This document shows positions 29,371-60,100 of a DNA stretch of 64,000 nucleotides, piece by piece. The stretch spans positions 1,302,001 to 1,366,000 of the forward strand of contig NC_047077.1 in NCBI RefSeq assembly GCF_902459465.1, given 5' to 3'. Position numbers and translations under genes: made by a program. Positions within the stretch are counted from its first letter, which is position 1, and each line of letters begins with the position of its first letter. Source of the stretch: Asterias rubens (Eukaryota). The notes below the pieces were generated by a model. That model was not told the DNA's origin, did not search any database, and was given only the letters and a program-made list of their open reading frames with translations.

Positions 29371-31580
29371 CCCTTTGTATTTCTCGTTTGTGGGAATTCC
29401 CAGTTTCTATATTTAGCATTTGTGTTGTACACTGTGCTACATGTATGTGATGTATTGTCATTTACTGTACAGATATTTATTGTGTGCTTTTTGCTGGTTT
29501 ATTTATTGTATTCGTTATTATTTTGATTGGTTCGTTGCTTTTCGTTTAACTTTGCTGTACTTTTTGATGTACTTGTATTTGTTGAGGTCAAATAAATAAT
29601 AATAATAATAATAATAATAATACTCATACTGCATTACACACTGACTTTGACGATAACCTTAACCTCTGACCGGTTTATATAAAACTGGGACTGTGTTTGT
29701 ATTGTGAAAGAGATTGGCTGTTGTCAGCTTGGCATTTACATGTATTCTATTGTAGGAGCTTTCAGAGTTCCCTTAGTGGGAAGATTTTCGAAACATCGGA
29801 CAACCAAACAAACACTCTAGGCCTAAATTGACGTGCCAAACTGATTACCCTAATTTGTATCCCCCACTTTTTTGAAATGATAACAACTTTGGAAAAATCA
29901 GTTTTTGTCCTTAGAGCCCCAGACCCATCCCTTTAGGCCCTCACCCTACCCCCTAGACCAAAGTTAACTCCCACCCTTGGCTACACCTTAAGCCCCACAT
30001 CAGTTTCACTCTGTTTCTTTAGACTCCATGTTTTTGGCATTTTTTTCTAAAGATGATTTAAATAAAAACATTTTACAGTAGGCCTTACTGTTTGTAAACT
30101 TTTAGCCCTTCATAAATTGTAGAATGAATGACCTGTAACTATTGATTAGCGGGCCAGGTTGATGCGAGTTGTTCTTAGCAAAGCAAGTGTGAAAGCGTTC
30201 TGATCGACACTGTGTTCGTTATTACATGTAGCTCATGTGTAAATCTTCACCTTTTAGAAAAGTTTAAAACAAATGTTGTCTTCTTTGTTTTTCCATTGCA
30301 GCAATTGAACTTGCTTTGGATGAACCAATTGAACCAGTGGAAATGGGGGAGCCAGCAGCTTCACACTTCATGATAATAGAGTCTGCATGTTGGTTGTTCA
30401 CAAGATGGATGGCACTGTGATCTCTTCGAGCTCCATTTCATGAAAGGGTAAGTGCTCCTTTTGGGATTTATCTTAATCAATCTACGACTGACAAAGTGGG
30501 ACAGGATCAAGAGGCTGTTGATGAGTAAATGACAAATTAAAAAACAATGGGCAAGTAATGGTATAAGAAAACAGCTGCTGAACGTAACAACAAGTTGGAG
30601 ATGCAACTATCAAAAGGATGGTCCATGTGGAAAGGCTATGTAAAGGGGAGTATATAGAGAGGGGGAGGGTGTTGCATATGGTATCATAAATGTCCATTGT
30701 CCAGTTATGAACGTGTGGTGAAGAGGGGACTGGGCTTTGACAGCAAGTCTAGAATGCCTCAAAGTGGACATCAAAATACAACTACAATCAATTCACTTGA
30801 TGTGTGAACTGGGACAACTTGAACGTTTGAAAACGTTTTTTTTACATCTTTTTTTTGTGTCCAACAACCAGCTGTCCATACTCTTTACCGGTGTCCCTAC
30901 ATTCTTTTACCAATGTCCCCACAGTACAGAAGCTAGGCTTGTAACTAAGCTGTTAAAATACATACTAGCATAACAAGTCACTTGATAATGAGCAATGGAG
31001 AGCTGTTGATGGTCTAACACATTGTGAGAAAAGACTCTCTCTGAAGTCACGTAGGATTTGAAAAAAGAGGTGACTACGCAGTAAAGTATTTGAATCTGTC
31101 AGAAAGACTTCAGCCCTGAAGCCTAAAGATTTACTGTAAAACTTACACTGTTTAAAGATAATAATCCAATATAACTTGCTCAGGTATAAAACTAGGATTT
31201 TAAAAACTTCACAGTCCTTTTTATAGCATACATGTAGGTGAGGCATATCCTTTACTGTCCTGGAAACAAAAACACATATACATGGCAACTGTGTTTTCCT
31301 CATAGGATGGTTGACGCATTTCCTTAACTATCCTAGTTAAGGAGTAAAAACAAATACATAGTAGGTGTTTTTTCCTTCTAGGTTGGTTGAGGCAATTCCT
31401 TAATTATCCTAGGAGTATAAAATTCATGTTAACATCTGTTTTTCTTCCTATGACTGTTGAGGCATTTCCTAAACCATCATATGATTAAAAAATACATAGC
31501 AACTGTATCTTTCCTCCAAGGATGGTTCAGGAAATGCCTCAACCATCATAGGAAGAAAAAAAACATGAATGGTTTATGCT
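29365..31580. repeat. Segmental duplication, paralogous to ~44070-49860 (the latter interrupted by the piggyBac and a 152-bp insertion)
   Basis: Continuous by-eye homology, for example ggaattccc.gtttctatatttag, ggcctaa..gtgccaaactgat.accctaatttgtatc and gcagcaattgaacttgctttggatga. Confidence 0.9.
29475..29621 (+). mobile_element. 3' tail of a non-LTR retroelement ending in (AAT)n
   Basis: T-rich tract ending ggtcaaataaa(taa)n. Absent from the paralogous position at ~44165. Confidence 0.6.
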
Positions 31581-31660
31581 TTTCCTCATCCATTCTACGA
31601 ATAATAAAGATATGTTAGTTGTGTTTTTCCTCTTAGGATGAATAAGGCATTTCCGTAACT
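31300..31660. repeat. Array of ~60-bp self-complementary units in mixed orientation (paralogue ~49555-49850)
   Basis: The unit aggatggttgaggcatttcct(t)aaccatcct and its reverse complement aggaaatgcctcaaccatc recur. Confidence 0.65.
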
Positions 31661-32925: not shown

Positions 32926-32981
32926 ACCCACTCAGAATAGTTACATGTAGCCGATCTATCGGTGAAACTACTGGTAACCGA

Positions 32982-34678: not shown

Positions 34679-35130
34679 AAAATACTGAGGCAGTTGAGAT
34701 GGTAGTCTACCTTCCTCATTCTAGAGTAGATCTTAACTGCTAGGCCAATGAGCTCACCCAGTGACAAGGAGCAAGTTTGAATCATATTGAAATACTGAGA
34801 CTGTTGAGATGTTAGTCCACAGTTGAGATGGTAGTCTACCTTCCTCATTCTAGAGTAGATCTTAACTGCTAGGCCAATGAGCTCACCCAGTGACAAGGAG
34901 CAAGTTTGAATCATATTGAAATACTGAGACTGTTGAGATGTTAGTCTGCCTTCCTCATTCTAGTGTAGATCTTAACTGCTAGGCCAATGAGCTCACCCAG
35001 TGACAAGGAGCAAGTTTGAATCATATTGAAATACTGAGGCAGTTGAGATGGTTGTCCACCTTCCTCATTCTAGAGTAGATCTTAACCACTACATGTAGAC
35101 TAATGAGCTTACCCAGTGACAAGGAGCGTT
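34679..35130. repeat. ~110-130-bp tandem repeat, 4 units
   Basis: Unit aaatactgag.c.gttgagatg..ccttcctcattctagagtagatcttaactgctaggccaatgagctcacccagtgacaaggagcaagtttgaatcatattg. Confidence 0.9.
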
Positions 35131-36156
35131 TAAACAAAGCCGTGATTTGAATAAAATATTTATTTCAATGTTTACTCTCTGTTAGTTATAACTTGGAATT
35201 ATAGCATACAAATTGGGAATTACTTAAAATATAGAAAAGCAAAATAGGTAAAACAATTAATGACTGATTCTTGTTACTTTAACCATAGATTATGTGCCAT
35301 GAACGTATACAAACTAAATAAGAGTACATGAAATGCAGTATACATGTAGTCCAAAGAGGTATTAAGGGCACTGTACACGTTTGGTAATTACTCAAAATTT
35401 AGCATAAAACCCTACTTGGTAACAAGCAACGGAGAGCTGTTGATAGTATAAAACATTGTGATAAACAACTACCTATGAAGTAATGTAGTGTTTGAGAAAG
35501 AGATAATTTTTTAATTAAATTTATAAAAGACTTCTGGTCAGAAGAGGCCTTTTATTCCTATCTGAAAGCACACTATTTTGTATAGCAAGGGTGTTTTTCT
35601 TTCATCATTTTCTTGCGACTCCAATCACCAATTGAGAACAAATTTTCCAGGCTCGTTATTTTATGCATAGTTGGGATACACCAAGTGAGAAGACTGGTCT
35701 TTGACAATTACCAACAGTGTCCAGTGTCTTTAAGTCACAGCAATGTCACAACAAAACCTCAAAGGATACAAATTTGCTTTAACTTTTAAACTTATAAACT
35801 GTATTAAAACTTATAAACCACAAAGGGAACTGACTAATATTTATAAACGATACAATGTTTGTGTGACCTAGAGAGGTGAGATCTTACAATGATCAGACTG
35901 TTGTAGTTTATTTGCTTTTGTCAGGGTTCCATGTTGGCACTGATATTCCACAAAACGGCAAACTGGTTCGGAAAATTGATCATGCAGGTGATTCAGAGGA
36001 AAATTTTAGAAATCTAATCCAAAGCGATTAAACTCGATAAAACATATACCATGTTTTTTTTTTACTCTGTATATTTTCTTGGTTGATGAAATGATATTAA
36101 TTTATCTGTTGCCGAAATGTTTACTACAGCCTCAATGTTATTGTGGTCCAGCATAA

Positions 36157-36346: not shown

Positions 36347-36364
36347 TAAGGTTTGGTATTGTCT

Positions 36365-36467: not shown

Positions 36468-39279
36468 GAGGTGAACTAATGTTTTATTTATTTATTTGGG
36501 GGGGGAGGAGGAGGGGGGCACTGGATGTCGAAAAACCTCCAAAAGCGAGCTCTGAAAGAGTTAACTAAATTACACTTCAGAAGTTAAACTCAATATGAAA
36601 TTGATTTCAATAAGAACTTCACAGTTTTTTTTTATTCTATTTAATTTAATCTTAACAATTGTTAATAATAATAAAAACAGTAATTACTTGCAAAAGTATA
36701 ATGTCACTCCATTACCATAAACCATTTATTGTACTGAATAGGAACGACGAGAAAAAAAAAAGACTTTAGAAAATAAAATAGAACCTTAAAAATCCACTTT
36801 AATAAAAACTGCAACAAAATAATCACAAAGACTACATGTACATTTGTACATGTAAGACTTAAAGGAACTGGAAACATTTGCTAAAATCAAAGACCATGAT
36901 TCCCACTTGTGTATTCCAACATGTGCATGAAATAATAAATCTCAGAAGTATGGACTCAATTGGTCATTGAAGTTGCAAGGAAATAAATCAACGAAAAAAC
37001 ACCCATGTTGCACAAATGCATGCTTTCAGATGCCTGAAAAAGGCTTCATTCCTGAACTGTTTCTCAGATTCAAAAATTTTAGTGAGTCATAACTTTCTTT
37101 TCAAAAATATGTTTCTGTGAGGGAGTCGTTTCTCACCATGTTTTCGCTATCAACATCTCCCCGGTGCTTGTTAAAAAAGTGTGCATTTTAGTAATAACCA
37201 AACATGTCCAGTGCTATTTAAAAGAAACTAAACTCTACAACATTTAAAACACAATTTATATGGTTCTGCTTTACAAATCTGATTTTTTGCTTTTTTAAAG
37301 GGAAGGTACACGTTTGGTAATTACTCAAGACAAACACTAACTTAAAAACTGACTTGGTAACGAGCATTAGAGAGCTGTTGATAGTATAAAACATTGTGGG
37401 AAACGACTCCCTCTGAAGTAACGTAGTTTTTGAGAAAAAGGTAATTTCTCTCTAAAATAACAAAAGACTTCTAGCCAGAAGTCTTTTATTCTTATCTGAA
37501 AGCACACAAATTCGTCCAACAAGGGTGTTTTTTCTTTGATCAATTTCTCGCAACTTCATTGACCAATTGTGCCCAAATTTTCACAGGCTTGTTGTTTTAT
37601 GGTTATAAAGGGATACACCAAGTGCGAAGACTGTCTTTGACATTTACCAAATGTGCACCTACCCTTTAAACAAATTACATTTGAGTTGTTTAGCAATGCT
37701 TCAGATACGGATATGTCAACACTTTATGTGTTCATGTAATGCGTAAATGTTGCTTCGGTGTTTTTCATGCATGTTGACAAGAGATGCTGGAGCTCATACA
37801 CATGTATGTTTGTCCAGAATGGATACTGTTTTGCTGATTTAGTTGTATTGTTGCCCTGGATTCAAAACATTTTCCCTGGTATTGCTTGTATTCATATGCA
37901 AGCAGTTGTGGTTTACAAACAGTTCCATGTGGTTAATGAACATTGTGCATTCAAACCCATATCAAATACTTGTGCAGTAAATGTATGTACGTACATGTAA
38001 TGTGCCTTGGAATAGGCCTCTGGAATTTGTTATTTCCCATCTGAACTTCTTCCTCCTTATTAGAACACCACTCTTAAAGTTACATTGTGCACTCACTTGT
38101 ACATTAGTATAATTGTACAAGTACAATTGCGTTGAGCAACATAATGTAGTGTGCTTCTTAACATTTCAAATTATTTCTGTTTGTTTGCATCAAGGTGTTG
38201 AATCTTGGTCGCAGATTGATTTTGTAATAAGAATGATTGTGAACATTAAAACTGTGGCCCAATATTATAACTTGAATTCAGCACTGACCCTTCATACCAA
38301 CTACATAAGATTTTCACTTTCAACATAATCACTTAACTACATACAGTTGTTGTTTTCATTATACATGTGTACACCTGTCAGCCTACACTTAGGCTGGACA
38401 TTTTGTAACTCAATAACCATCATTCTATTACCAGACACAACAAATTACAAAAAACACAATTGAACTTTGCAAAATGTGTTTTGGCATCATTTGTTACTGT
38501 GGAATACATACTATGAAAGATTGTATTCCTACCAAAATGTTCATTTCTTTGTGAGTTGACTGAATTTGCTTATCTGCTCAGGTTGGTTGAAATGGTTCAA
38601 TGAAATGCTTTTTTTTTCCACTTAAAAACAATTACAATTTGTATGTCAAAAATGTTATCACTCTTTCTGAAATTTATGAGAATATAAAATTGAAGATATT
38701 TTTGAAAAACTTCCACATTGTTCTCTCTTGTCAATAATGCATTAATCATCATTTTCTACTTCACTAGCCAAAACATCATATTTATAGCAAAACTTTATTT
38801 TACAAACCAATGCGTAAAAGAAACACCATAGTTTCAGTGAATTATTTAAACAAATGTTTCCTTTAAGAAACACTTATTGCATTATGAGATTATTGTCAAG
38901 CTATTATAACCATTCTCATTGATGAAGTAATAGTTGTATCATGTTTGCTTTGCACAATAACCAAAATATCAACATCCAAATTTACAAATACATCGATAAA
39001 GTTTAACTGCATTTTTTTTTTTTTGCACTGTTCCCCTAAAATAAAAAACTGGTTCATAAAATTAATCTTGGGGTTGTTCCTGAAAAACGTGGAATCCTGA
39101 ACCCAAGTGGTGAAGTATAATAATGTTTCTTTCATGTTTTGTTGTCACATATGATAGCATATCTGGTGAGTGAAATGATATTTTCGCAATATGATATTAT
39201 TATTTATTAGTTTCATGTTGTCAAATGCTTACTTCAGCTTGAATGTTATTCTGGTCCAGCATAATGTTTGTTGATGTCT

Positions 39280-41079
39280 TTACTCATGCTGATAGATATG
39301 AACTGAATTGTCTGTAGCCACAACCAGATCACCAGCAGGTGTGAATGTGATACCATTGGGATAACCACAATCCTTGATGATACATCCAATGTACTTGCCA
39401 TCAGGACTGTAATGATGGATATCACCTGATGATGGGAATGGTTCTCTCAATACAGCAACATAGATGCTACCATCCTTGTCACAACACACACCATTGGGCC
39501 ACCCAGACTGATTGATATCTACTGAGAATACCATTTCACCATTGTAGGTTACTGATACTAACTTCCTGGTCTCCCAGTTGGTGTAAATGAGTCGCTGTTT
39601 GTAGGTAGTCAAGTATCACCAATCCCTGGAGCAGACAGTCTTCTGATGAGGGATCCATCTGGTTTATGTAGAGAGATCTCTGCCTTGAAAGGATGACCCA
39701 CTTCATGACCCACTGCTATCAGATTGTTGTCATCCACTGCAATACATGATGGTTCACTGCCTGGATTGAACTGATGGAGGAGCTGATAATTCCTATTGAA
39801 GATCTTGACTGCTCCTCTATCTAGAACAATGAGCTCATCATTCTTATTCACAGTCACTCTGCTTGGTCCTGTAAGTCCTTGGATTGATAGTTCTTGTGAG
39901 ACATTATAGGATTGAGGGTTGCTCTCTGCTGGTATTGTAATCAAGCTGGTATTATCCAATCTGCCACAACAATATCACTATTAGAGTATGCAGCAACATC
40001 CCTTGCATGAATCTTCACCATCTGTTGTTTCATGTTCTTGTATTTATTCATTTTTGTTTTTAATGTCCATTTGTCTTGTTTCATGGATTGAAATGTTGGC
40101 TTTCTAGCCTGAGCAGAAGTTGCTGATTCCACTTGTTGTTCATCTTTCAGCACCAGTCTCCCTAGTGATTTCTGGCCTTCTTTAAAGTCCATATAACTCA
40201 ACCCATCGGGTACTTTTGTTGATTTCTTCTCACTGTATTCTTTGAGGTCTTGTAGGAGTTGTTCTATGTGATGTACAATCTTCATCCGTTGATCCATGAG
40301 TTGACTTACCTCATCTTGCTTGAGCTCTGCTGTGTTTATCTCTTTGCTGTTAGTAGCTCGTGCAGTTTGCATTATCTTGACTCTGTCTTTATAAATCTGT
40401 TCTGCCTCTAGCATCAGTTTCTGCTTCTCCTCTCTGATCCTGGCAGCCACCTTGGCAATCTTCTCATCAGCCTTCTTGGAGATTTTCTCTTTGGTGGCAG
40501 CAAACATAGAGTCTAGTTTCTTACGAGACGTGTCTATTTCTTGAATGGCAATGGTGAAGGTCGTGATGCTCTGTCTTACTTCTGCTAGAAGTTCTGACGC
40601 ATGTTGTTTACTTTTGTCTGAAGCTTCACTCAGTTCTATTACAGGGTGTGTTCTGTGGTCTTTTGAAATGCAAGTTGTACATATCAGTTTCTTGCATGTT
40701 TCACAATACAGGATAAGATCCTTGCCAGTATGCTTGCTACACTTGGAAACAAACTCCTGACTGGGTACTTGTTTTTCTTGCTGCTGTTTCAGTTGAGTTT
40801 CCTTTGTTTCAATTGCTTCTATCAATGAAATGGTTTTAAAGTCTGTTTTCAGACCATCAATGCCGGTTTCTTTTAAAAGAGTTTCTTTTCTACACACTGG
40901 ACATGAAAGCCTTGTAGTACTTGACTATTCTGTCTGAGTTGTTGAAGGCATTCAAGACAAAATGAATGAGAACACTCCAGTAGTTTGGGTTGCTTGAAGC
41001 GTCCACTGCAAATTGGACATTCAAGATGATCCTGACTTATTTCTGCTAGCACTGACTGAACTGTTATATTGGATGCCAT
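39280..41079 (-). pseudogene. Full-length TRIM-NHL paralogue broken by three single-base deletions (pseudogene or assembly error)
   Basis: ORF pieces 40873-41079, 39941-40897, 39609-39959 and 39280-39612 tile the 590-aa paralogue. Frameshifts at ~40922, ~39953 and ~39617. No substitution-derived stops in the reconstructed frame. Confidence 0.85.
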
Positions 41080-41760
41080 TTTGTTGGAAGTTGCTTTAGT
41101 GATGATCTGTAAAGTAAAAGAAGAAATTGACTCAATTAGATGATATCAACAATGTACATATCCCGGTAGTTCCCTCATCAATGCAAGACTTGATTTCTTG
41201 ACCATATTACACTCCTTGGCATAAAGTTAAGGATTTTTAATTTGACTGATTTCACAACAGGTCTTGATTTTTGTTCTACGTTCTATGATGACCAATCAAG
41301 TAGATAATTTACACGGTCATACTAAACTGCATGTCAATACGGGTACAGACATATCACAAGATCAAAGAAGTATAATACTGTATGCCTCTTTTGCAGGTTG
41401 CCATACTTGAGCAGGTATGTAAAGTTTGAGATGTGGGAGGGAAACCCCAATCAGGGAAAACCCATGCAATGAGGTAGGGACTGAAAACACATTCCACATG
41501 CAAGGCTTTGGGCGATGATTTGAACCAGGGTCCACAGAGGGTGAAAGACAGGGAAAGAAACCACTGAGCCAAGCTGATTTCAAATATTGCATGCACCAAT
41601 AGAAATCACAGTTTGTAAAATGATCCATGAAAATATCTTGTCTTTATTTAAGTGAAGAGAGTACTACTTTGTTTCCTTCCATGAAGGGCGCACGTCCCTA
41701 CCCCCAAGTAGATAGAAAACAGAACAACCGCCTCATGAATGTTTTTGAATATAGTTTTAA

Positions 41761-42092: not shown

Positions 42093-42749
42093 TTTGTCGA
42101 AATGCATCTTACGGTATCTACAAAATTGGAAGACTGCGCCGTTATCTTGACCAGAATTCCACCGAACGCCTTGTCCATGCATTTGTATCTTCGCAGTTGG
42201 ACTATTGTAACAGCCTCCTTTAAGGTTTACCATGCAACATCCACAATTCCCCTCCAACGCATCCAAAACAGTGCAGCACGTCTAATTGTCCGAGCAAAAC
42301 TTCAAGAACACATCACACCAGTCCTTCAATCCCTTCACTGGCTTCCCATTAACAAGGGAATCACATTCAAAGTCCTCCTGCTTCTTTTCAAAGTCAGAAA
42401 TGGTCTCGCTCCTACTTATCTTCAGAACCTTATTTCTACCAAAGCCCACAGTTCTCGCAATCTTCATTCCTCTTCTACTTCCCATTTGTGTTTGTCTCCT
42501 GCACCCCGCACCCACACCCGGTAAGGCCAAGGAGCCTTCACAGTCAGCGCACCTACATCATGGAACAATCTCCTCTACATATCCGTCAGGCTTCATCTCT
42601 TGAATCCTTCAAAGCCATGTTAAATACTCATTTACTTCTTTGCTAAGCCTAGCTTTTGTAGTTTTGTATTTATTCATAGTTTTGTACAGCGCTTTGTAAC
42701 TTTTGTAAAAGGCGCTATATAAATATTATATATTATTATGATTATTATT
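42093..42749 (+). mobile_element. 5'-truncated L2/CR1-group LINE (post-RT C-terminal region and 3' tail)
   Basis: Translates with a stop and frameshift as RNASYGIYKIGRLRRYL..LVHAFVSSQLDYCNSLL*GLP..LQRIQNSAARL..HITPVLQSLHWLP..FKVLLL.FK..GLAP.YL..AFTVSAPTSWN. Ends ggcgctatataaat plus a (tta)n-like tail. Confidence 0.88.
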
Positions 42750-44323
42750 CTTTCCTATTGTTAATATTTTTGTTTTTAGTTCACGCTGACAAATTTCAGA
42801 CAATCCCAGACAATGCCCTGCACCATGGCCCCATGACCCCATGCCCCCTTTCAATGTTTGCTCTTCTGGCTCTCCTTGCACAGTCTTTGGCGCTCCCATC
42901 AACATTAAGCGAGGGGACAGTAATATAATAAAGGTCCTATATACAATTGTGACACATTTTGATAAAGACAAACTATTTTGACATTTGCATGTGATGGAGG
43001 AATTTGAAGCGATGTTTAAATATTCCTTTTTGTCCAGATTTCTTTGACTGGGTTCAGAATTGTTCAGTTGATCCTTTGTTGAGATCATATTTAAACAGAA
43101 AATTGATGGGTTAACCAGTGTGTGTTAAGAAATGGGAATAAAAGGGTAGCGACGAGTTCTGACACGGCCGTTTGAAGCCATCAGGGTCGAATTGCCGGGT
43201 GATAAAGGGCTGAGCCAAAGGCGAGGACCTTTAGCGCATTACGCGGTTACGGATAGGAAAACCTATTCGCCATTAACCGGATATTCGGATAATTCACCCA
43301 GGCCTAATAATTAGTATGTACCTACACACTGCACATGACAACTATAATTTACGTACATTTAATAACTACCCTGTATACACGTATGTATACTCAAGTATAC
43401 ACTTTGACTCTGGACTTATGGTGTACACAAATATATTGTGTTGATACACAGTAATTACCTTGTACATGTACATGTACATCATGAATATTTCCATGTCATA
43501 CGCAATAATTCTAATGTGTGTTCCCTGCAGACTTACATGTATTTAAACATGATATTGTGCAGCTATCCAAGTGAAAGAATCCTCCCAAACAAGTTGGCTA
43601 CAAACTTAACATCATACTTTAAGTTTTAAATAAAGTCCATCAAAGCTGTGTTTCGGTTGCCATCAAAGTAAAAAATACATCATCTCTGTAAAATAAGGCA
43701 CTATTTCAAAGTCTTTTGGTTGTGTACATAGAGATGCTGTGGTGTGTGAGGGTTTTGCTGTGTATATCAACTCAATTATAGTACTTGGATGAAGTCTCCT
43801 AGTTTTTATATTTGATTGTTTATACCCACTAAATTATTGCTATACCAAATTTATATCCCCAAGGCATTTTAAAATGTGAACCTTATTTTGACAAAACACA
43901 ACACATTTATAACTTACTGGTTTTTAATGAAAGAACATGGCTTGGAACATCAACTGGCATGAAACATCAAATTGTGTAGTACATTAAATTCCAACATTGA
44001 TCCGTTAGATGTTGGCACAACACACTGAATGGTTGCTTTCTGTTTATCGTTCAACGATGCCACACCAAGCCCTATGTATTTCTCATTGTGGGAATTCCCG
44101 TTTCTATATTTAGTCTTTGTGTTGAACACTGTGCTATGTGATGTATTGTCATTTACTGTACAGATACTCATACTGCAGTACACACTGACTTGACAATGAC
44201 CTTAACCTCTGACCGTTTAATACAAAACTGGGCTGTGTAATGTTTGTATTGTGAAAGAGATTGGCTGTTGCCAGCTTGGCATTTACGTCCATCCTATTGT
44301 GGGAGCTTGCAGAGTTCCCTTAA

Positions 44324-47300
44324 AACCCTAACCTTCCCCATCCATGCAAATTCCAACAGGGCAATGTGTGTGATTTTGTTTGGTTAAGTACAGTAGAGTA
44401 CACTTAAGTTTGGGCTGGGTGTTTGATTATGACTGATTGTGTATTCTAGCTGCTAAGTGATGGTGTTGAATTTCGATTGAGTGGGGAAGGTGGGCAATAT
44501 GTGTGGGCATGGTGTTGGGTTGTGTGGCTAGAGCAAATGGGCACTGGCAACTTTCTTCTTTTGTGTTGTAACATAAACAATTAGGTGATAAGGGGTGACT
44601 GGTAGTGAAGTGATGAGGGGCTTAGGGTCATGATAAGGTAGACGATTTATGTCTTACCCTTTTTTTTATTGCCATAGGTCTGACCACATGTTTGGCTTTG
44701 TAAAAAACAATGCATGATGCAGGTGGGTAGACTCTACCATTGATAAGCAGGGACTTTTAAAAGTAATTGTACGCTGTATTATTAATTCTTTTATAAAATA
44801 ATATCTTTATAATTCTTTTATGAAGTGTTATATAATCTAAGTAGTGTTTAACAATAGTTATGAATAAAAATTTAAATAACTATGGCACCATTGCCTATAA
44901 ATAAGAGGGGTTTCTGAGATTCATCACCCAGTCGAAAGTGACTACACCCAAGTCAACATGACAGCACGCGAGGCTAGAGTTCTACAGCAGAGTTTGAAAA
45001 GTGGAGAAGTGGATGATTTTGTAGAGTCCATGATGGGAAAGAAGACGAAGAGACAGCACAGGAATGAGATTGACGGAGCAGTCAAGGGAAAGAAAGATGG
45101 AGGAAGAAAGGGGAGAGACAAGGGGAAAGGAAAGGGGAAAAGCAAGCCTGTTCGCCCCAGAGAGACCAGCAGCGCAAAGATGGACCGTCTTTACAAGGAG
45201 GAGATAGCTGGGCTCCGGCAAGCCATCAGAGAGAGTGTGAAGGGGGCTGGCATGACGATGTCCAGTGGCAGATACAAGGCATTGGCCGAGACATCAGAGA
45301 GCGAGGAAGAGGAGTTCCTCAACAGGGCAGTAGCAGAGGCCAGAGGACTGTCTCCGTCTTGCCTGCAGGATGAAGAAGAGGACACGAAGGAGAGTGATAC
45401 AGAGGATGAGGAGACAGGAGAAGAGCAGGGGGAGACTGGAGAGGAAGAGACCGGGAGAAGAGAGAAGGAGACAGGAGGGGACAAGACTACAACCGAAGAG
45501 GAGGAAGGAGATGGGGAGACAGCGACTGAAGAGGGTGAGGAGACAGGAGAGGAGACAGAAGGAGATGAGTTAGATGTACCCGGACCTTCAAGTAGGCCTC
45601 CCAAACGAAAGCAGCCTCAGCCTCAGCCTCAGACGAAAAAACCAAAACTGACCAAGAAAAAGAAGAGAGTTGTAGCCCCGGATTCAGACAACGACCCGGA
45701 TCCCCCATCAGTCTACCAAGAAGACTATGCCCCTGATGAGGAAGGATGGACGAGGGCGCTGGAAGATGTCAGCATCAGGGCCTTCAAAGGGAAAAAGCCT
45801 TACGGCCCAACCTTCTCCAAGAAACAGTCCCCGTTGAAGTACTTCTTGAAGTTTTTTCCCCTGGCCCTGATCCTGTCCATCGTCACATGGACGAACATCA
45901 ATTTGAAGAAGGGCCATCTCCGTCTAACTTCACTGCAAGAGATGAAGGCATGGCTTGGCATACACATAATGATGGGCCTTGTCAAGTTAAATAACTACAA
46001 GGACTATTGGTCTTCACACCCAGGTTTACGGAACAAACTCATTTCGCAGACGATGAAGCGCAACAGATACGATGCCCTCAGCCAACACATCGCCTGCAGT
46101 AATCCTGCCAATAGTCCTGACCTCATCCGCGACAAGGCCCATCGTTATTTAGCAAAAAAGAAGAACCCACTCCACCCAATGAAGCCTGTATGGGAGAAGG
46201 TTCGACACAGGTGTCTGAAGAGCTACCTTCCACGCCGAGAGCTGACTATCGACGAAGCTATGGTGAAGTACCGAGGATTTAAAGCCAGTGTGAGAAAGTT
46301 TTTTATGCCATTGAAGCCCATTCGCACTGGCTTTAAGATCTACGTCATTGCGGAAGCAGCAACAGGTTTCTTCATCAACTTTATAATCCACCCACACGGC
46401 GCCACTCCTACAAAAATGGTAGACATAGCAATGAAGACAGCCAAACACAGCCTCGGTGTGTACCACCATCTATTTACCGACAGACTGTACACTTCAGTTT
46501 CCCTCGCCCGCACTCTCCTGGCCAAGCGCACATATTTAACCGGTGCAGTTAAATCAAACAGCAAGGGTCTACCAAAGGAATTCTCATCGTCAAAAATAAA
46601 CAACCGAAGAAAGATGAAGAAGATGAATGCCTGCCCAAGGGGAACCTTCTACACCCGACAAAACGGCCAACTCACGTCATGCCTGTGGAAGGATAGCCGA
46701 GTCATGACCCTGCTCTCCTCCGCCCACCAAGGATGGAGAGATCCAGCCACAGGCACTGTAATTCGAAAAGTCGCCAATGCAGAGGGGAGACTGCGTAAGA
46801 AGACAATCCCGGCCCCACCCCAAGCAGTCGATTACATCAAGAATATGGGAGGTGTTGACAGAGGAGACCAGTTGAGAGCGTACCACACCTGCACAAGGAA
46901 GTCTCAATTTTGGTGGGTCGGCCTGCTCTATTTCCTGGTGGATGTTGCGAGGGTTAACGCTTGGCTGTGCTACAAGCAGCACCACACCCCAGCCAACGAG
47001 AGCAGCAGTGACAGCAGTAGTGATGAAGAGGAGAAAGACGACCATAAGAAGCTCACCCACTCCAAGTTTGTCCTCTCCATCGCTACTGACCTCATCGATG
47101 GATTTGCAAGCGGAGACATTGCTCGACAACCTGCCACTCGCCCAGTCCCAGCAACCAATAGTGCAGGGCACTATTCTGTCAAGATGCCAGGGCGAAATGC
47201 TCGGTGGTGTAGGTGGTGTAGGAATAAGAACATTCTAACAAAGTCCGGCCTGCCCAAGTCTACACGGCGAGGTTGTCAGGTGTGTGGGATCAACCTGTGC

Positions 47301-47901
47301 CCTGGAAAATGCTTCCTTGAATTCCATGCATCTGTCAACACTGCAGGAGCTGACTCCACTACCAGCACCACAGAGTAACCACCAGTATCACCAGTGGCCA
47401 CCCCTCATCATGGAGGAATTTTCTCCATACCCTCACAAAAAGCAAAAAAAAAAAAAAAAAAAAAAAAAACCTACCTAACAAAAGAAAAATAAAATAAAAA
47501 GGGCCATGATGATCTATTGAGCCAACATTATAATACGCGAGTTGTGGGAATACCCAAGTTGTGCTCCAATTGAACTGAGTCCATCATAAAAAAATCCCTT
47601 TCCTAGAAAAAGATACTTCTTATGCAGCTAAACAAATTGTGTGGAAAACACTTGTTTGATTATGTTAGATTGGGCACTGTGTACTAGCACTGATCAACTA
47701 CTGCACAAGGCCAACTATACACACTCCATCAAATTCAAACAGGAAAGGGCCTGTGGGAGTATGTGGGGTTGTGTATTGTTCTTATCAGCATACTGTTTTA
47801 GTTTGTTTGATTGAGTACAGTTTGCTCTGCAGGGTAATACATGGTGTTGAAGTATGTTGGGTTGAGGAAGGATTCTAATAAAAATACCTAGGGAGTTAGG
47901 G
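44324..47901 (+). mobile_element. Full-length, potentially autonomous piggyBac transposon
   Basis: TTAA at 44320-44323 and 47902-47905. Ends CCCTAAC (from 44326, preceded by an extra AA) and GTTAGGG. The paralogous empty site cagagttccc-TTAG-tgggaa is at 29773-29776. Confidence 0.85.
44958..47378 (+). CDS. piggyBac (PGBD4-like, DDE_Tnp_1_7) transposase, 806 aa, uninterrupted
   Basis: Catalytic motifs TIDEAM, FTDRLYTS and MGGVDRGDQ. C-terminal Cys-rich domain WCRWC..GCQVCGINLCPGKCFLEFH. Long basic/acidic N-terminal extension with NLS-like PPKRK and KKKKR. Confidence 0.95.
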   Translation: MTAREARVLQQSLKSGEVDDFVESMMGKKTKRQHRNEIDGAVKGKKDGGRKGRDKGKGKGKSKPVRPRETSSAKMDRLYKEEIAGLRQAIRESVKGAGMTMSSGRYKALAETSESEEEEFLNRAVAEARGLSPSCLQDEEEDTKESDTEDEETGEEQGETGEEETGRREKETGGDKTTTEEEEGDGETATEEGEETGEETEGDELDVPGPSSRPPKRKQPQPQPQTKKPKLTKKKKRVVAPDSDNDPDPPSVYQEDYAPDEEGWTRALEDVSIRAFKGKKPYGPTFSKKQSPLKYFLKFFPLALILSIVTWTNINLKKGHLRLTSLQEMKAWLGIHIMMGLVKLNNYKDYWSSHPGLRNKLISQTMKRNRYDALSQHIACSNPANSPDLIRDKAHRYLAKKKNPLHPMKPVWEKVRHRCLKSYLPRRELTIDEAMVKYRGFKASVRKFFMPLKPIRTGFKIYVIAEAATGFFINFIIHPHGATPTKMVDIAMKTAKHSLGVYHHLFTDRLYTSVSLARTLLAKRTYLTGAVKSNSKGLPKEFSSSKINNRRKMKKMNACPRGTFYTRQNGQLTSCLWKDSRVMTLLSSAHQGWRDPATGTVIRKVANAEGRLRKKTIPAPPQAVDYIKNMGGVDRGDQLRAYHTCTRKSQFWWVGLLYFLVDVARVNAWLCYKQHHTPANESSSDSSSDEEEKDDHKKLTHSKFVLSIATDLIDGFASGDIARQPATRPVPATNSAGHYSVKMPGRNARWCRWCRNKNILTKSGLPKSTRRGCQVCGINLCPGKCFLEFHASVNTAGADSTTSTTE

Positions 47902-51100: not shown

Positions 51101-51217
51101 CCCCTGTACAAAATGGTATATACACAATGCCATTTACCCCTCTGCGAAACATCAATGACTCACTCTGGAATGTTAATGGGAGTCTGAGGTTGCCACCCAC
51201 TTCAAACCTAAAGAGGT

Positions 51218-51362: not shown

Positions 51363-54300
51363 CATGTTAGGAGATATCGCTCGTGACTCCAGCCAATCAG
51401 ACAACTTGAAAGAGGGAGTTCGGTTCAGGGTTTTGTAGACTTGCAACCCGACGTCTGTAACGACACAACCGTGTTGGATTCCACAAGGATGCCATGCCAC
51501 TGGACCTTCTAATTTTCAATCCAAGATGGCGCGGGTTACGCTTTTAATAGTATAGATAACAAGTATATGTCAGTACAGGGCAATGTAAACTGTGCACTAG
51601 AGCTACTTGCTGTTATAGTCAAAGATCAGACAAACAACCATTTATAATGATCAATGGCCAGATTATCAGTTTATTGGAGTACATGTATGGCTGCTGATAA
51701 TGAACTTGGACTGTAAATACAAAAACAGTTTGAAATACATCTAGGTCTGTTACCAGGTACTGTACATACATGTAGTACAGTGAATGGTGGAGGAGGGGGG
51801 GCACTGGATGATGAAAAATGCAGGTGAAATTCCATAACAAAATAGCTGACTTCTGGGTACCAGCTACTTATCATTTTTTATACCGTAGATCGATCTTTGA
51901 TAAATACTAGCGTGTGATTTCAACCCACACTGAAATGGTGTTTGGTGTTCATCATAAGTAATTTTTTGAGATTTTTTGTCCGGGCACTGACAATTTTGCC
52001 AAGCAGCAAGACGACCAAAAGTTGTTCCATGATCTAAAAAAAAAAAATGCGCTCGGCCACTGATTTAGATTGGGATTGGCCATTTTCAGACAAGCAACTT
52101 ATATTAACTGATGAGCTGCATTGAAATACATGTAGCAGGTAATCCACAAAGCTTCTTATGGTCCTCGTGTTGGTAATTACTCAACGATTATATGTTAGCA
52201 TAAGAAATTATTTGTTAACAGAGCTGTTGATAGTAGATAACATTGTGGCTCTCTCTGAAGTACATGTAATGTAGTTTTTGAGAAAGAGGTCATTTTTCTC
52301 TCAAATATTAAAATACTTAAGGCCTGAAGCCTTTTATTATGCATCTTAAAGCACACAAATTTATGCAACAAGGGTGTTTTTCTTTCATTATTTTCCTGCA
52401 ACTTGAATGTCAACTTGGTAAAAATTTCCACAGACTTGTTATTTTATGCATATATTCTGAGAATACTGGTCTTTGACAATTACCAAAGTTGTCAAGGGCC
52501 TTTAAACATACTACAAAATAAAAAAGTTTTAAGTAGCAAACTACAGGGGGAACAGACTGAACATCTTGCCTTAGTTTTCATCCTAGATAGTTTAGACTGC
52601 CACTTTAAACCAGAGGTTGTATTTTTAAGTCCCGCTCTTGAAAAGTGTTCTTTGTACGATCCATATTCTTTGAAAATTACCCCATTTTCCATGTGGTTTA
52701 TTACTTGATAATTGACATAATTTGTCACATCCCTTTAAGGTGATCCCGTTGCTGCAGCTTTTCAGGTTGTATATAAACTGAGATTTGACTCTTGGCTATA
52801 CCACAGTTACAAGTTGAATGGCTTCTGACTGGCAACACTAAATATCAAAAAGGCTGTATAATCAGGTTGTCTACATACAAAATTTACAAACTACAATTCC
52901 AAATATAACTTACCAGTACTCTGATCCTCTTTTATCTCAGGCTTTGCTCCTCATCTTGTATGCCCATAACCATGGTAACCCAAGACCCATAAGATCCTAC
53001 TCAGTCTCAGACTCCCAAGGTAGATGCTGAAGACTCTGGCAGTGAAGCTCTGAAGACACTACAGGGAGAGTTGAAGATGTACAAGAAACAGGAAGCTCAC
53101 AATGAGAGGTAAGCAATAGTCAGCATTTACTGTCAATGTTTATTTCATGTTGACATCTCTCCTCACAGACTTACAGATCTTCTTGTTTGTCACAGACATT
53201 TTTATTTCATAGCCACGAGGTGTTTGTTTGTTTGTCTTTGACATATCTTGGAGGATGATATCTAGAATTGGTTTGATTTGAGAAACTTCTCAAACCAAGA
53301 ACAAACTGAGAAGGTTATTACATGTACCTGACTGCATGGCATAGTAAAACTGTTTTTTCAGTGTACTTGTCTTCTGTTGTTAGTAGTTGGTAACTGGTAA
53401 ACACCGTGAAAACTGTGAGATTTTAGAGAACTATTTAAAGTCCATTTATTAGAAATTGAAAAATCTGAATGTGGAGAACAAAGTTCAAAGTGTTGTCGGC
53501 TTGTATTTGCTACAAAATGTTGTGACTAAGTGCACCAGGCACAGGCTCTGGTGTTTTTGATCAGCAGAGTGTTGGTTTGAGTCCCAGTCTTGTGACTTGT
53601 GTCATTAAGAAACTATTGTCACTTAGCTATTGTCTGATCGGTTCGGTTTTGGGGATCAAATGTAGAGCCGACTGTGTTTGGTGGGGGGGGGGGGGGGGGG
53701 GGGTTGGCCTCAAGTCAAGTTTTATACAGCTTCAGCTTGGAGCGTGATCTTTCGATTGTGATGGTAGTATTTTGTTTGTTAAGTAAGCCGAGTTTTGGAA
53801 CAGCATAACAAAAAAACAAGTTTGCCTTTTGTGGCTTTTGTTGCATTTTGAGAAATGTTTCACTTTAAAGTACTGTAGGTTTGGTAAAATATTTTTTAAA
53901 AAAATATACTTTTTTAGGAGTGATTGTACAAACTATAAATCCTGTTGAATGTGATACAATATGTTCCTGAGATTGGGTTTTCCAATCAAAATGGCATTTA
54001 AAGGCACTGGACACTGTTGTTAAATAACTCAAAATAACTGTCAGCATAAAAACTTTCTTGGTAACCAGCAGTGGAGAGGTGTTGATGGTTTAAAATATTT
54101 TGAGAAACGGCTCCCTCTGAAGTAATGTAGTTTTGAGAAAGAAATAATTGTTCACTGAAATATTTGAATCGAATAAGAGACCTGAGCAGCTGAGATCTAA
54201 AATTCAAGCATCTGAAAGCACACAACTTGTGTGACAAGGGTGCTTTCTTCCCTTATTTTCTCGCAACTTCCATGACCAATTGAGTTAAAATTTTCTCAGG

Positions 54301-54934
54301 TTTGTTATTTTACACATATGTTGAGATACACCAAATGAGAAGACTGGTCTTTGACAATTACCAAAGGTGTCCAGTGCCTTCATGAATGAAACGTGTCAGT
54401 ACAGGGCAATGTAAACTGTGCACTAGAGCTACTTGCTGTTATAGTCAAAGATCAGACAAACAACCATTGTATGGCTGCTGATAATGAACTTGGACTTTAA
54501 ATGCAAAACAGTTTGAAGTACATCTAGGTCTGTTATCAGGTACTGTACATACATGTAGTACAGTGAATGATGGTAATTAGCTGACATACATGTAGTCAGA
54601 TTTGTTTCTGCATTTTGCAATACTTTTACATAGGCGAGCAAATTGAGGTGAATTTTGATTGATTTATTTATTTTGTTTTGTTGGGGGAGGGGGCACTGAA
54701 TGTTAAAAAAAACATCAAAAAGCGAGCACTGAAAGATTTTAAATAAGACTTTATAACATAAGTTTTCTTTATAATCTCAGTATGACAATGATTTCAATAA
54801 GAACTTCAAAGTGTTTTTTGTTTTGTTTTTTAATCATGACAATTGTTAATAAAATAAAGCAGTAATTACTCGCAAAAGTACATGTATGTCTCTGGGCCCC
54901 TGCACCACGGCCCCATGACCCCTTTCAAAGAAAT

Positions 54935-55700
54935 GACCATTCACTGTTTGTGCAAATTCATAGTAAGCCCCCCCCACAACTAAAACATCCTTACTGTTCT
55001 GAATATTGTTAGAACACTATACTCGGCAAGCAATGAGCATTCACTCTCTGTACAAATTCATAGTTACCAGCCCCCCCCCCCCAACTAAAACATCCTTACT
55101 GTTTTAAATGTTGATTGAACACTATACTCAACAAGCAATGAACATTCACTGTCTGTACACATTCATAGTAAGCCGCCCACCCCCCCCCCCCCCAATCTAA
55201 AACATTATTTCTATTTTGAATATTGTTTGAACACTATACTCAACAAGCAATGAACATTCACTGTCTGTACACATGCTAAGTAAGCCGCCACCCCCCCCCC
55301 CTTCCAACTAAAACATTATTTCTGTTTTGAATATAGTTAGAACACTATACTCAGCAAGCAATGACAATTCACTCTCTGTACAAATTCATAGTTACCACCC
55401 TCCCTCCAACTAAAACATTATTTCTGTTTTGAATATAGTTAGAACACTATACTCAGCAAGCAATGACAATTCACTCTCTGTACAAATTCATAGTTACCAC
55501 CCCCCCTCCAACTAAAACATTATTTCTGTTTTGAATATAGTTAGAACACTATACTCAGCAAGCAATGACAATTCACTGTCTGTACACATTCATAGTTAGC
55601 GCCCCCCCCCCCTCCAATCTAAAACATTATTTCTATTTTAAATATTGTTTGAACACTATACTCAGCAAGCAATGAACATTCACTGTCTGTGGGCATTCAT
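54935..55700. repeat. ~100-bp minisatellite (~7.5 units), paralogous to 16500-17065
   Basis: Same unit as 16500-17065 with array-specific variants (aacattatttct, ttttgaatat). Confidence 0.9.
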
Positions 55701-55949
55701 AATCTTGTTAAAGAACTTCTTTTGTACTGTATGCCATATCATTAAGCCCATACACACAAAATCTTGCTTAGCACTTTAAAGTCCTCCTAAGCAGAAAAAA
55801 AGTTACCTGTCAAGTTTATGAGGTTGCAGCAGGTGCCCAACTTGGTCAATAAATTTGCTAAGCAGCATTTCCTGCTTAACAGTTTTGGGATATTGTATGA
55901 AGCTAAGGTTGGACTTTTCTCTGTTTAAGCAATGCAAAAAAAGGTCAGC

Positions 55950-56040
55950 GTATCAATCAATCAATCAACCAATCAATCAATCAATCAGAGGGAATTTATA
56001 TAGTGCCAAAATCAACCAAAGTTGTTCAAAGGCGCTATAC
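55950..56040 (-). mobile_element. 3' end of an L2-type LINE/SINE with (TGAT)n tail
   Basis: The minus strand reads gtatagcgcctttgaac..ggcactatataaattccctc(tgat)n. Confidence 0.55.
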
Positions 56041-57189
56041 AAGGTCCTATACAAGTGCGACACATTTGATAAAGACAAACTAGTGTCATATCTGAACGGG
56101 GAATTTGAAGCGACGTTTAAATATTCCTTATGTCTATATTTCTAAGACTGATGGATTCAGAATTGTTAATTTTGATTGAAAATGGATGGGGTTGGGAACA
56201 AGTGTCTTTAAAAAAAGAAAAAGAAAAAAAAAAGTGAACAAAAATCAATCAAAATGTTGCAAAAAAGCATTGATGGCAAAGTGTGCTGTATTTTTTTTTT
56301 AACCATTTAATTATTATGTTTTTACATGACATCATTTACATACATTATAACCACCCTGTCTGGACTTCATGAGGTGATCGTTCCGCGCTCGTCTCCACGA
56401 ACCTCAAAGCGGGTGAATCTCAAAGCACACCCTAAACATTTTGCCCTTTTTACAATCCCCAATGTACAGTTCCTTTTCTGAAATCAGATCCGTAATTCAC
56501 ATCCCATCCTCGCTGTTTTACTGTTACAACAGCCGGCGATTCGTGATTTGTGTGCAAAACAAGCCCACAGGTCCGGGACCCGCGCAGCTGTGCACAGTGT
56601 ACCAGTTAGCTCTGTAGACTTTTTGCAAATGCAGAAAACATACTAGGAACAGTATTTGACATCTGCTTAACTTTAATAGAGTGCGGAAAATGTGTTTCTT
56701 GTAGAACAGCACACAATGCCTCATTTAACTCTATTTTGTTAATGTTAGGATAAACTTTGATTATCTTGTATTATATATACCTCATGTTGGAAATCCTCTA
56801 ATCTGATTGGTTAAAAAATCCCCCCCCCCTTTTCTATCGAGATGACGTCATAGTGACTATGCCCAGCATGTCAATTGATTATGTCTGTCGAAAATAACGT
56901 AACTTTTATATGTATAATGTACAACAAGCATTCCGTGTCACAGCAACCTTTCTTCGCAGACGACCTTTCACCATAGTAAGTGTTGTTGATTAGAAGAATC
57001 TTTTATTTCGGTTTATTAAAGAAATATTGACAGCTAAATAATCGGGGCACTGTTAAAAATACAGACCCTCGGTGATGTCGAAACCATGACTATGCCTTCA
57101 GCTTCGCTTCGGGCATAGTCATGGTTTTGACATCTTCCTTGGGCCTATAATTTTAACTGTGTTTTCATAGAAGTCAATATTTCCGTATT

Positions 57190-60100
57190 ATAGTGGTTTG
57201 CAAACTTTCTTGAGCTGTCCAACCATGCCCTCTGTTGCTGCTTACCAGGTTGTATCATAAAACCATAGAGTGAGGTGATCCCTGGCTATAATATACTGCA
57301 GTTGCAGGTTCCATGGCTTCTGACCAGGGCCCAACTTCATAGAGCTGCTTAACGGTTGATTTTGTGCTTAACAGCGCATCTAGCAAATTTTTCATTTCAT
57401 AGCCTCGCTTTTAAGACAGTAGACACTATTTGTATTACTCAAAACAATTATTAGCATAAAACCATAGTTTGTAATCAGTAAAGGAGAGCTGATGGTATAA
57501 AAACATTGTGAGAAACGGCTCCCTCTGAAGTAGCGTAGTTTCGAGAAAGAAGTAATTTTCCACGAATTTGATTTTGAGACCTCAGATTTAGAATTTGAGG
57601 TCTTGAAATCAATCATCTGAACGCACACAACTTTGTGTGACAAGGGTGTTTTTTGTTTGATTATTATCTCGCAACTTTGACAACCAATTGAGCACAAATT
57701 TTCACAGGCTTGTTATTTTATGCATATGTTAAGACACATCAAGTGAGAAGAATGGTCTTTGACAATTACCAATGGTGTCCAGTGTATTTAAGCAAGGTTT
57801 TTTTGCTAAAAGCGGTAAGCAAACAAAAACGGTCCGTAAAGCCCAAACCTTTTTGCCTTAGCACCCTGTTTAAGCACAGCGCATAGTGCTACATCACTGC
57901 AATAATGCGTTGTTAGTGTGGCAGCGGTTTGTATTTCACATGTGTGTGTATGATAGGTTCAGCGAAGTAAACGAGTGTCTAAAATATTTTAGAAACGTTG
58001 TACAGTGTATTTTCTTCTTGTTCACTCTCAAGTTAGCGTGTAAACCTTTCAAGGGCAATACAGACAGAGAAGGTGATGATTTGTTTGTTAAGGCCACTGT
58101 GTATTTATTTCGCCTGCCATTATGTAAGCACCTTCTTCTTTTTTGCTGACGCAGACGACCCAAAATATTGCGCGTGCAGTTTGTTTAGCAACCGCTCGTG
58201 AATTAGGTTTACGCTTTAAGGCAGTGGACACTATTGGTAATTACTCAAAATTTGATTTCGAGAAATCAAGCATCTAAAAGCACACAACTTCGTGTGACAA
58301 GGGTGTTTTTTTTTCTCTCATAGTTATCTCGCGACTCCGACGACCAATCAAGCTCAAATTTTCACAGGTTTGTTATTTTATGCATATGTTGAGATACATG
58401 TACACCCAGTGAGAAGACTGGTCAGTGACATTTACAAATAGTGTCCATTGTCTTTTAGCAATTAATTTTGCCAAATAAAGCAAACAAAAATTGCTTACCG
58501 TTAACCAGCTCTATAAAATTTGGCCAAGGTCTCTAATCAAACAAGGCATTTCATTCTTGTTCTCTACATGTACATGTAGCAAATATTGACCAATCACAAT
58601 TTTGTTCGCAACTCACCCAGTATTTGAGAGAAGAATATAGCATGAAACACAGCAACAATCAATAAAGTTGATGAGGAAATTCCAGCAATGATCTGTTTAA
58701 TGTTGGCACAACACACTGAATGATGTTCCACTGTATTTCCATAGAGTTACACAGCTCAAAGTCCCCTACTTATTACTGTTATGTGGAAATTCCAGTTTCT
58801 TAGTTTAGCTCTTGTTTGTAGCAGTGTTATGGTTAACATACAGTTCTACTGATACTGCACTTAGCGCATATTTACACACTGAAATGATATCAATCTGAAA
58901 GTTCTTGGTGTATGTGACCCCTACATAGATAGACCTTTTCGCAAATACCATTGTGCAAGCGCAAACTGTCGAATGAGGTGCATGCTGGTCTAGCTAGTGA
59001 TCAAGTTTGATAGTTAGCTAGACCAGCATGCACCTCGTTCCATGTCTATTGTGCACGTACCCAGTATTTGCGATAAGGTCTATGTACATAACTGTGACTC
59101 AGTGACTAATAAATAACAGGTTGTTGAACATTGGACCACAGCATACTACAATACTTGTCTGGTTTTAGATTCAGATGTCATTTTTGAACAGAACCTTTTT
59201 TTTTTTAACTTCTATCTTTTTTTACCCATCATGGCCGACTCATTCTCGTGCATGTGAAAATAAGGAAGCTTTTTGTAAAATGAACTTGTTTTATTTGTTT
59301 TAGTCATTGAAATAAAGACTTTCATCATTCTTGTTTGAACTTCTTTTTATTACTAATGACTGCTGTTTGCTGCTTGCTCGAGTAATTTTAGTTAATTAAT
59401 GGTTGCCACATAAATCAAACATTAAAAATTTTAAAAAGGTTTCAAAAACAAATCCCAGACCTGGTTTTTATATTGTTTGAAATACAGAAATACAAGATTT
59501 ACCCAGCAGTTGTTATATTAGAAAGCCTTTAGCTTTGCCCTTAACTTCATCACAGAGCGTAGACATGATTTGGGGTTTTGTAAAACTACTTATTTTGCAT
59601 GTACCCGATAAGTTGTGTATTACCCATAGTCATTGGCAATGCACAATCACACTGAAGCATGTAGTTTAAACAGTTTGACAATCTTTTGAATCCCTTATTT
59701 GAACCCTTCTTCTTTACTCTGATCCTCTTTTATCTCAGGCTTTGCTCCTCATCTTGGATGCCAATAACCATGGTAACCCAAGACCCATAAGATCCTACTC
59801 AGTCTCAGACTCTCAGGGTAGATGCTGAAGATTCTGGCAGTTAAGCTCCGAAGACACTACAGGGAGAGTTGAAGATGTACAAGAAACAGGAAGCTCACAA
59901 TGAGAGGTAAGTGATAGTCAGCATTTACTGTCAATGTTTATTTCATGTTGACATCTCTCCTCATAGACTTACAGATCTTCTTGTTTGTCACAGATGTTTT
60001 TATTCACAGCCGAGAAATGTTTGTTTGTTTGTTTGTTTGTCTTTGACATACATGTATCTGGGAGGATGATTTCTAGAGTTGGTTTGATGAGAGAAAACTT

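Follow-up and report, generated by a model that had tools for sequence, protein, structure and literature searches.

Why should one palindromic octamer, TACATGTA, recur in a stretch of sea-star DNA at places where related copies of the same sequence have a plain TA? The question is raised by 64,000 nucleotides of the Asterias rubens genome (NCBI RefSeq assembly GCF_902459465.1, contig NC_047077.1, positions 1,302,001 to 1,366,000 of the forward strand), to which we refer as the window and whose coordinates are used below unless a comparison locus is named. An earlier note on this DNA had read the octamers as scars of cut-and-paste elements of the Tc1/mariner type that duplicate TA and have CA..TG ends. 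We find that this is still the best explanation, although the element stage that it presupposes is not demonstrated, and we consider it probable that the octamers (called scars here) were left when TA-duplicating transposons whose ends are CA..TG were excised and neither 2-nt overhang was lost.

First, comparison of paralogous copies indicates that the octamer arises by insertion. When the window was compared with itself by BLAST, 406 paralogous alignments with 1,161 distinct indels resulted, and an informative paralog was found for 11 sites or site groups, with nine exact 6-bp gains at TA and two differences of equal length (29737 and 53319). The nine independent TA to TACATGTA insertions include all seven that the earlier note had listed, each of which is borne out at its coordinates by the paralog alignments. 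At 29438-29445, the single A. rubens partner (44077-44166, 87.8% identity) has TA; the scar at 35090-35097 lies in one unit of a tandem array, and the sister units beginning at 34681, 34820 and 34920 have TA; and both partners of the scar at 60049-60056 (18547-18667 and 53221-53295) have TA. The scars at 52261-52268 and 58395-58402 each occupy one copy of a dispersed repeat family, with TA in five family copies in the first case and with eight to nine family copies lacking the 6 bp in the second. At 51680-51687, a young scar is found in one A. rubens copy only, being absent from the partners beginning at 20712 (94.5%), 61450 and 11676. A four-way alignment at 54587-54594 has TA in the three other copies, which read ACATAGTC; this alignment needs two events because the copy also carries a separate and unrelated 17-bp deletion just upstream, adjoining the scar. 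In addition, two scars stand 14 bp apart at 36833-36854 (36833 and 36847), where an old copy (12318-12330) keeps plain TAs at both positions, and the pair has been inherited by three paralogous copies, as it is also found at 62070-62091 (62070/62084) and at 21735-21756 (21735/21749), the last with its first scar decayed to TACGTGTA.

Second, the direction of these changes can be read from the distribution of the two states. At six sites within the window, a single copy with the scar faces two to nine copies without it. Comparison loci (L001 to L009, the cross-species ones ~22 kb each) include two from Asterias amurensis, L002 and L009, in which the counterparts of 29438 (L009:6032-6119), 51680 (L009:14520-14641, 92.2% identity) and 52261 (also in L009) have TA. 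Other scars are common to A. rubens and A. amurensis, namely those at 35090 (L002:14405), 29737 (in both L002 and L009), 31229/49493 and 48370 (L002) and those of the 20853 repeat family; the one at 35341 is also present in A. amurensis, decayed to TACATTTA. Moreover, at L002:14134 and L009:14469 A. amurensis has scars that A. rubens lacks, three copies of the latter showing TA there. The outgroup copies come from multi-copy families, and "species-specific" therefore strictly means copy-specific. Because A. amurensis shows TA copies, common scars and scars of its own, these alignments indicate that the changes are gains, some made before the two Asterias species separated and others later, and that the scar at 35090 predates the separation. 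The proposal that the octamer is an insertion and not the ancestral state thus holds in the outgroup copies with TA.

Third, the product is remarkably uniform. In a census of all paralog indels in the window and four loci, 11 six-bp events have the TA-duplicating form, and ten of them are CATGTA, the other being CATCTA, so that the expected enrichment of this class among 6-bp indels between paralogs is found. Gains of CATA or TGTA at TA account for none of the 106 four-bp indels in the census, and only two five-bp gains at TA were seen: CTGTA, giving TACTGTA at 11357-11363, where the paralog beginning at 37377 lacks the 5 bp, and its counterpart CAGTA at L001:9037, giving TACAGTA at L001:9035-9041. 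Such CAGTA and CTGTA gains are the canonical scar of elements with CAG..CTG ends (PMC6943129).

The number of octamers in the window is equally striking. A shuffle count confirms the earlier impression that the word is conspicuously frequent, with 39 copies against 1.77 expected and a maximum of five in 100 dinucleotide-preserving shuffles, and TACATGTA is, homopolymers aside, the most enriched octamer of the window. When the 16 palindromic TA-xy-y'x'-TA words are ranked, it is far ahead of the others, and TAGGCCTA (2699, 29818, 48211 and 50987) shows a minor excess of four against 0.4. Seven of the 39 copies are inherited within duplicated segments (the groups 20853/51767/54550/61590, 31229/49493 and 36833/36847), which leaves about 32 independent sites. 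One-mismatch neighbors of the octamer are near expectation, with 51 against 41 in the window and 120 against 85 over four sea-star species, a sample in which the exact word occurs 79 times against 3.7 by first-order expectation. Because these neighbors are so close to expectation, the counts suggest that the scars are mostly intact and have a mean age of a few percent divergence, with a wide error.

The earlier note had ascribed the record of excisions to this genome; it is present there but is not peculiar to it, as four sea-star species and a brittle star are enriched. All cross-species loci are neighborhoods of TRIM or piggyBac genes, for which protein searches matched only sea stars and one brittle star, and their expectations follow a first-order Markov model. 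In A. amurensis, we counted eight octamers against 0.63 expected (L002) and five against 0.43 (L009); in Patiria miniata, ten against 0.55 (L003) and 28 against 0.56 (L006); in Acanthaster planci, 17 against 0.29 (L004) and five against 0.42 (L007); and in the brittle star Amphiura filiformis, five against 0.47 (L005). These loci are enriched 10- to 60-fold, and a eukaryote contig from ENA (L008), which is a weak negative control, has none against 0.66 expected. The A. rubens locus L001 (GCA_902459465.3, LR699107.1) overlaps window positions 54314-64000 at 99.6% over 9,687 bp, the whole shortfall being 37 N-masked positions, and its new part beyond the right end of the window (L001:1-12104) holds five octamers against 0.41. 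Scar density is ~0.4-1.3 per kb. Exact TA-to-scar gains between paralogs also occur in A. amurensis and in Acanthaster (L004:5835, partner 95% identical), and scar-type TA events outside the window were found in L001, L002, L004 and L009. In the pooled 207 kb from five species, the octamer is found 117 times against a second-order expectation of 8.3, TAGGCCTA 11 times against 1.0 and TACCGGTA five times against 1.0, whereas the non-palindromic TA-NNNN-TA words in excess are microsatellite-like or telomere-like only. An excess confined to palindromic words would be expected if each half derives from one inverted end. TAGGCCTA is the most enriched palindromic TA-NNNN-TA word in the brittle-star locus L005 (1416, 1429, 2706 and 14587) and occurs in L006 as well; despite their enrichment, no insertion event was found for TAGGCCTA or TACCGGTA.

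The placement of the scars is also selective. Compared with all TAs, 129 half-site flanks show a symmetric bias, with G favored at -4 (p=0.002), A favored at -3 (0.004) and T depleted at -1 (0.02), which, although modest, has the form expected of a target-choosing transposase. Tc1 and Sleeping Beauty likewise have an A-rich preference at -3/-1 of their targets, which the sea-star bias resembles. Of 72 independent sea-star scars, not one falls within an intact open reading frame (ORF) of the TRIM or piggyBac kind, where 5.1 would be expected from the share of TAs (P=0.005). This exclusion fits a stage that disrupts genes, and the frame-preserving mutation class that had been proposed has no visible effect. 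In addition, some sites appear to have been hit again: tandem double scars, with two CATG between three TAs, occur in the window at 58565-58578, 9081-9094 and 43463-43476, and six were found in a 142-kb asteroid sample (those three, with one more from Patiria L003 and two from Acanthaster L004) against ~0.5, a rough estimate from the counts for TAs hit at random. Patiria L006 has two further doubles and a four-unit array, (TACATG)4TA, at L006:20410-20435. Short scar arrays may grow by re-hits, with slippage contributing too. Acanthaster is the one case of strong clustering of scars (p <= 0.0002); in the window it is marginal (p ~0.06-0.07). An Acanthaster hot spot at L004:5835-8110 packs 11 octamers into 2.3 kb of the DNA that separates two TRIM genes, and 500 bp of it hold seven.

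What process could produce this pattern? Direct observation covers the gain of 6 bp at TA together with its polarity, uniformity and distribution over species, as well as the target bias and the exclusion from ORFs. The core of the excision reading is supported by the outgroup polarity, the symmetric target preference, the absence from ORFs, the re-hit scars and the companion 5-bp TAC(A/T)GTA scars. We infer from them an element stage, a 2-nt stagger and a repair route, which might operate as follows. A cut-and-paste transposon of the Tc1/mariner kind with CA...TG ends would insert at TA and duplicate it; upon exit, staggered cuts would leave each flank with a 3' overhang of two nucleotides from the element (..TACA and TGTA..); and host end joining that keeps both overhangs would yield TA-CA-TG-TA, a net gain of exactly CATGTA. 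With one scar written per hop and a low element copy number, scars would build up to the observed density while the elements stay rare, and by our rough estimate hopping at a few hundredths of an event per genome and generation would be enough. The process would have been active in sea stars and in the brittle star, both earlier and later than the divergence of A. rubens and A. amurensis, and would still be writing scars in several sea-star species; host repair would supply the uniformity across the contributing families. Nearly all Tc1-like ends begin with CA, so that several families could write the same scar.

This product has relatives among excision footprints described elsewhere. Minos reportedly leaves a 6-bp footprint, too, made of four element nucleotides and the duplicated TA (a finding attributed to Arca et al., 1997); its nucleotides come from one end (CGAG or CTCG) and are non-palindromic, whereas those of the sea-star scar can be read as 2+2. 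Excision of Tc1/mariner elements leaves 2- or 3-nt 3' overhangs (PMC3878927, PMC6943129), and end joining then produces scars in which the TAs enclose 2-4 nucleotides from the beginning or end of the element (PMC6943129). Like the TAC(A/T)GTA scars of Sleeping Beauty and Frog Prince (PMC6943129), of which the two 5-bp gains described above are examples, the sea-star scar consists of TA, terminal element nucleotides and TA, but the former arise from 3-nt overhangs that pair with one mismatch, add 5 bp and are known from experiments, not from a genome-wide word excess. With Tc1 and Tc3 of Caenorhabditis elegans (PMC3878927, 10.1101/659086), the sea-star process would share TA duplication and, if we read it correctly, CA..TG ends and the 2-nt stagger by which element nucleotides stay on the flanks. 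The statement that the octamer is the scar reported for these nematode elements is nevertheless inexact: the commonest Tc3 scars, as cited in 10.1101/659086, are TACATA and TATGTA, and because this 4-bp type is absent here, the sea-star scar is better seen as a variant than as the published nematode pattern. Excisions in rice were likewise recognized by comparative genomics, but there only eight of 94 were perfect, and the small number of scars varied in form and included deletions and filler DNA (Roffler and Wicker 2015, PMC4423477), in contrast to the one invariant scar of the sea star at its density. In the collection of papers that was searched, none ties this octamer to a transposon scar or to echinoderms.

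Several points weigh against an origin by excision. Tc3 keeps one overhang (+4 bp; 10.1101/659086), while the sea-star scar keeps both (+6 bp) and 4-bp forms are absent; more generally, end joining usually gives mixed products, yet the census contains no partial forms. Activity in two echinoderm classes, with scars that are mostly intact and hence young, needs a very long-lived lineage or many families with the same ends. Most importantly, the source is elusive. A clean filled paralog (TA-element-TA) was found at none of the nine clean scar sites, no Tc1-like transposase is among the 15 longest ORFs of the window in a Pfam comparison, and a gapped, anchored scan of 185 kb showed no over-representation of TA-flanked pairs of CA-class terminal inverted repeats (TIRs), with a single match. 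In ~76 kb of A. rubens, the TA-flanked CA..TG TIR candidates number two, and the sole candidate pair of a filled site and a scar combines a decayed scar with an element of ambiguous boundary. A scan of the window for TA-CA..TG-TA elements with long TIRs returned only a chance pair of scars, and an autonomous element was not found in 207 kb. The large insertions between paralogs are MITEs (miniature transposable elements with inverted repeats) of the TTAA type, a piggyBac, a tRNA-bearing unit, a Penelope-like piece and others, the TA/CA..TG type occurring only at 58922-59086.

That insertion is the first candidate, a palindromic TIR element of 161 bp (58924-59084) which is flanked by TA and is missing from its paralog. 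Its arms (58926-58948 and 59064-59086) are 91% complementary, and in one register the ends of the element read CATAG..CTATG, but the boundary is ambiguous because a small tandem repeat within the element permits a second reading, with TA at 58926-58927 and the end GA. At the paralogous site, 17646-17653, the sequence reads TA plus 6 bp, TAAATGTT, a candidate decayed scar with two changes; a match of four in six to the scar has a chance probability of p ~0.04 by our own calculation, and two changes in 8 bp are within range because the copies are 86% identical. The pair has the look that an old excision in one copy would give, to which we give modest weight because the small tandem repeat permits other registers. 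The second candidate lies ~2.8-3.5 kb past the right end of the window (L001:8578-9280), is flanked by TA and has perfect 14-nt TIRs that start with CAATCCCGGCCAAA, which we take to recall the terminal motif of Tc1; its structure is composite, and its inner part has an old, diverged paralog at window positions 42748-42918. Resident CA..TG elements that target TA, as the earlier note anticipated, are rare and represented by two candidates, which count in favor of the excision reading; both are old or structurally messy, and neither is demonstrated as the source of the scars. Trios of plain TA, filled site and scar were sought among the paralogs; none is clean at the scar sites, and one ambiguous pair (58924-59084 and 17646-17653) was found.

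Among the alternatives, the one that survives best, which we nevertheless hold to be unlikely, is that the elements end in self-complementary CATG and are cut 4 nt inside, so that cohesive overhangs anneal and are ligated into an invariant scar. Minos transposase, which cuts four nucleotides inside its element, provides a model, as does piggyBac, whose product is invariant without processing, with the difference that piggyBac restores TTAA and leaves no scar. Cohesive ends would account for the extreme uniformity in the census (ten of 11 TA-duplicating 6-bp indels and no 4-bp forms), the second enriched octamer, TAGGCCTA, likewise has a self-complementary core, and Tc1/mariner scars of up to four element nucleotides are on record (PMC6943129). 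However, neither of the TA-flanked candidates has CATG ends (they read CATA.. and CAAT..); outside the octamer, TACATG half-sites occur as often as expected (48 against 48.8), which argues that no CATG ends are resident here; and a palindromic 4-nt end would be required in every contributing family of five species.

An activity retained by the host, be it a domesticated Tc1-like transposase or another nuclease with a repair route at TA, is also improbable as the writer of the scar. It would explain why the process persists among asterozoans while elements are nearly absent, and it is consistent with the enrichment in all five asterozoan species (nine loci), with the mostly intact state of the scars, which points to a recent origin in each lineage, and with the failure to find an autonomous element in 207 kb. 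Against this, no enzyme is known to add CATG at TA without a transposon end, and pure cut-and-paste elements are expected at low copy number anyway. That one conserved host enzyme system, in place before sea stars and brittle stars diverged, is responsible (a domesticated transposase with dedicated repair, or germline-restricted elements) we regard as doubtful to a similar degree; if true, the scars would reflect a lineage-wide programmed or semi-programmed mutation process and not ordinary transposon debris.

We think it very unlikely that the octamer is a selected functional motif, such as a protein-binding palindrome, and owes its excess to selection. Such a role would suit a perfect palindrome that is absent from ORFs, forms intergenic clusters in Acanthaster and is conserved as a word across species, and there is a precedent in Phytophthora, where TACATGTA is a promoter motif (PMC11134190, PMC3520976), a use that we treat as coincidence. 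Selection cannot, however, bring about one and the same exact insertion of 6 bp at TA over and over in tandem units and decaying repeats; nine of the 11 informative sites are such insertions and not retained point-mutational variants, one-mismatch neighbors are close to their expected number, and decayed copies are tolerated. As a sole cause, selection is largely refuted, although it could still add to retention. Finally, reverse polarity, with an ancestral octamer lost by precise 6-bp deletions, or an artifact of assembly or alignment is hardly credible: pairwise comparison alone cannot polarize a site such as 29438 with its one A. rubens partner, but six sites have one scarred copy against several without, outgroup copies have TA, scars are inherited and mutate along with duplicated segments (21735 and 11817), and the same pattern is present in four independent assemblies.

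If the octamers are indeed excision scars, sea-star genomes keep a countable and datable log of cut-and-paste hops, a record that is normally hidden from view, since the scars found elsewhere are short and mixed. For a genome of roughly 0.4 Gb, 0.4-1.3 scars per kb would amount to some 10^5 scars in order of magnitude. This log would make transposition rates measurable through time, would test the idea that low-copy "hit-and-run" elements reshape non-coding DNA beyond their copy number, and would provide presence/absence markers, nearly free of homoplasy, for the phylogeny and population genetics of asterozoans. In addition, the uniform product would point to an unusually faithful joining of two non-complementary 2-nt 3' overhangs.

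The remaining octamers of the window are less telling. At 29737-29744, where an insertion is not demonstrated, the partner beginning at 44220 is an 8-mer of equal length with three differences, and the octamer at 53319-53326, whose partners beginning at 18623 and 60072 have unrelated bases over nearly equal length, is probably a chance member that originated by substitution. The octamer at 31229-31236 is common to the paralog at 49493 and to A. amurensis, and predates both the duplication and the species split. In the repeat family with copies at 20853-20860, 51767, 54550 and 61590, the octamer lies in the loop of a palindrome and is common to all copies, including A. amurensis L009:14493, with a decayed version at 11817-11824; its polarity is uninformative because it is old or was present in the master copy of the family. 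We rejected the notion that this palindrome is the tail-to-head junction of two Tc1-like ends, as its arms recur only inside copies of the family. The octamers at 9543, 13907, 14519, 28866, 30223, 32942, 33162, 35341, 37992, 43534, 48370, 52127 and 54879 have no informative paralog.

The window also contains intronless TRIM paralogs (RING/B-box/NHL) at 14955-16410, 23898-26173 and 39211-41745, of which only 23967-25823 (618 aa) is intact. They belong to a large tandem family that has expanded in Asterias, with dozens of relatives in A. amurensis and A. rubens at 70-88% identity, and the closest database relatives of the TRIM protein are from these two species. An intact piggyBac occupies 44323-47901 at TTAA, with a transposase ORF at 44958-47378 (806 aa) and without TACATGTA; its empty pre-insertion site is kept at 29773-29775 in a paralogous segment. 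Look-ups for the exact products of the window TRIM and piggyBac ORFs gave no match. TIR MITEs flanked by TTAA or TTTAAA are present or absent between paralogs at 19254-19874 and at 62539-62904 and 37300-37664, and a 366-bp MITE family has the ends GGGAAGG..CCTTCCC. Tandem arrays with a ~100-bp unit and long C/G homopolymer runs lie at 16530-16940 and 54930-55700, and the window has an 81-fold excess of eight-base runs of G or C.

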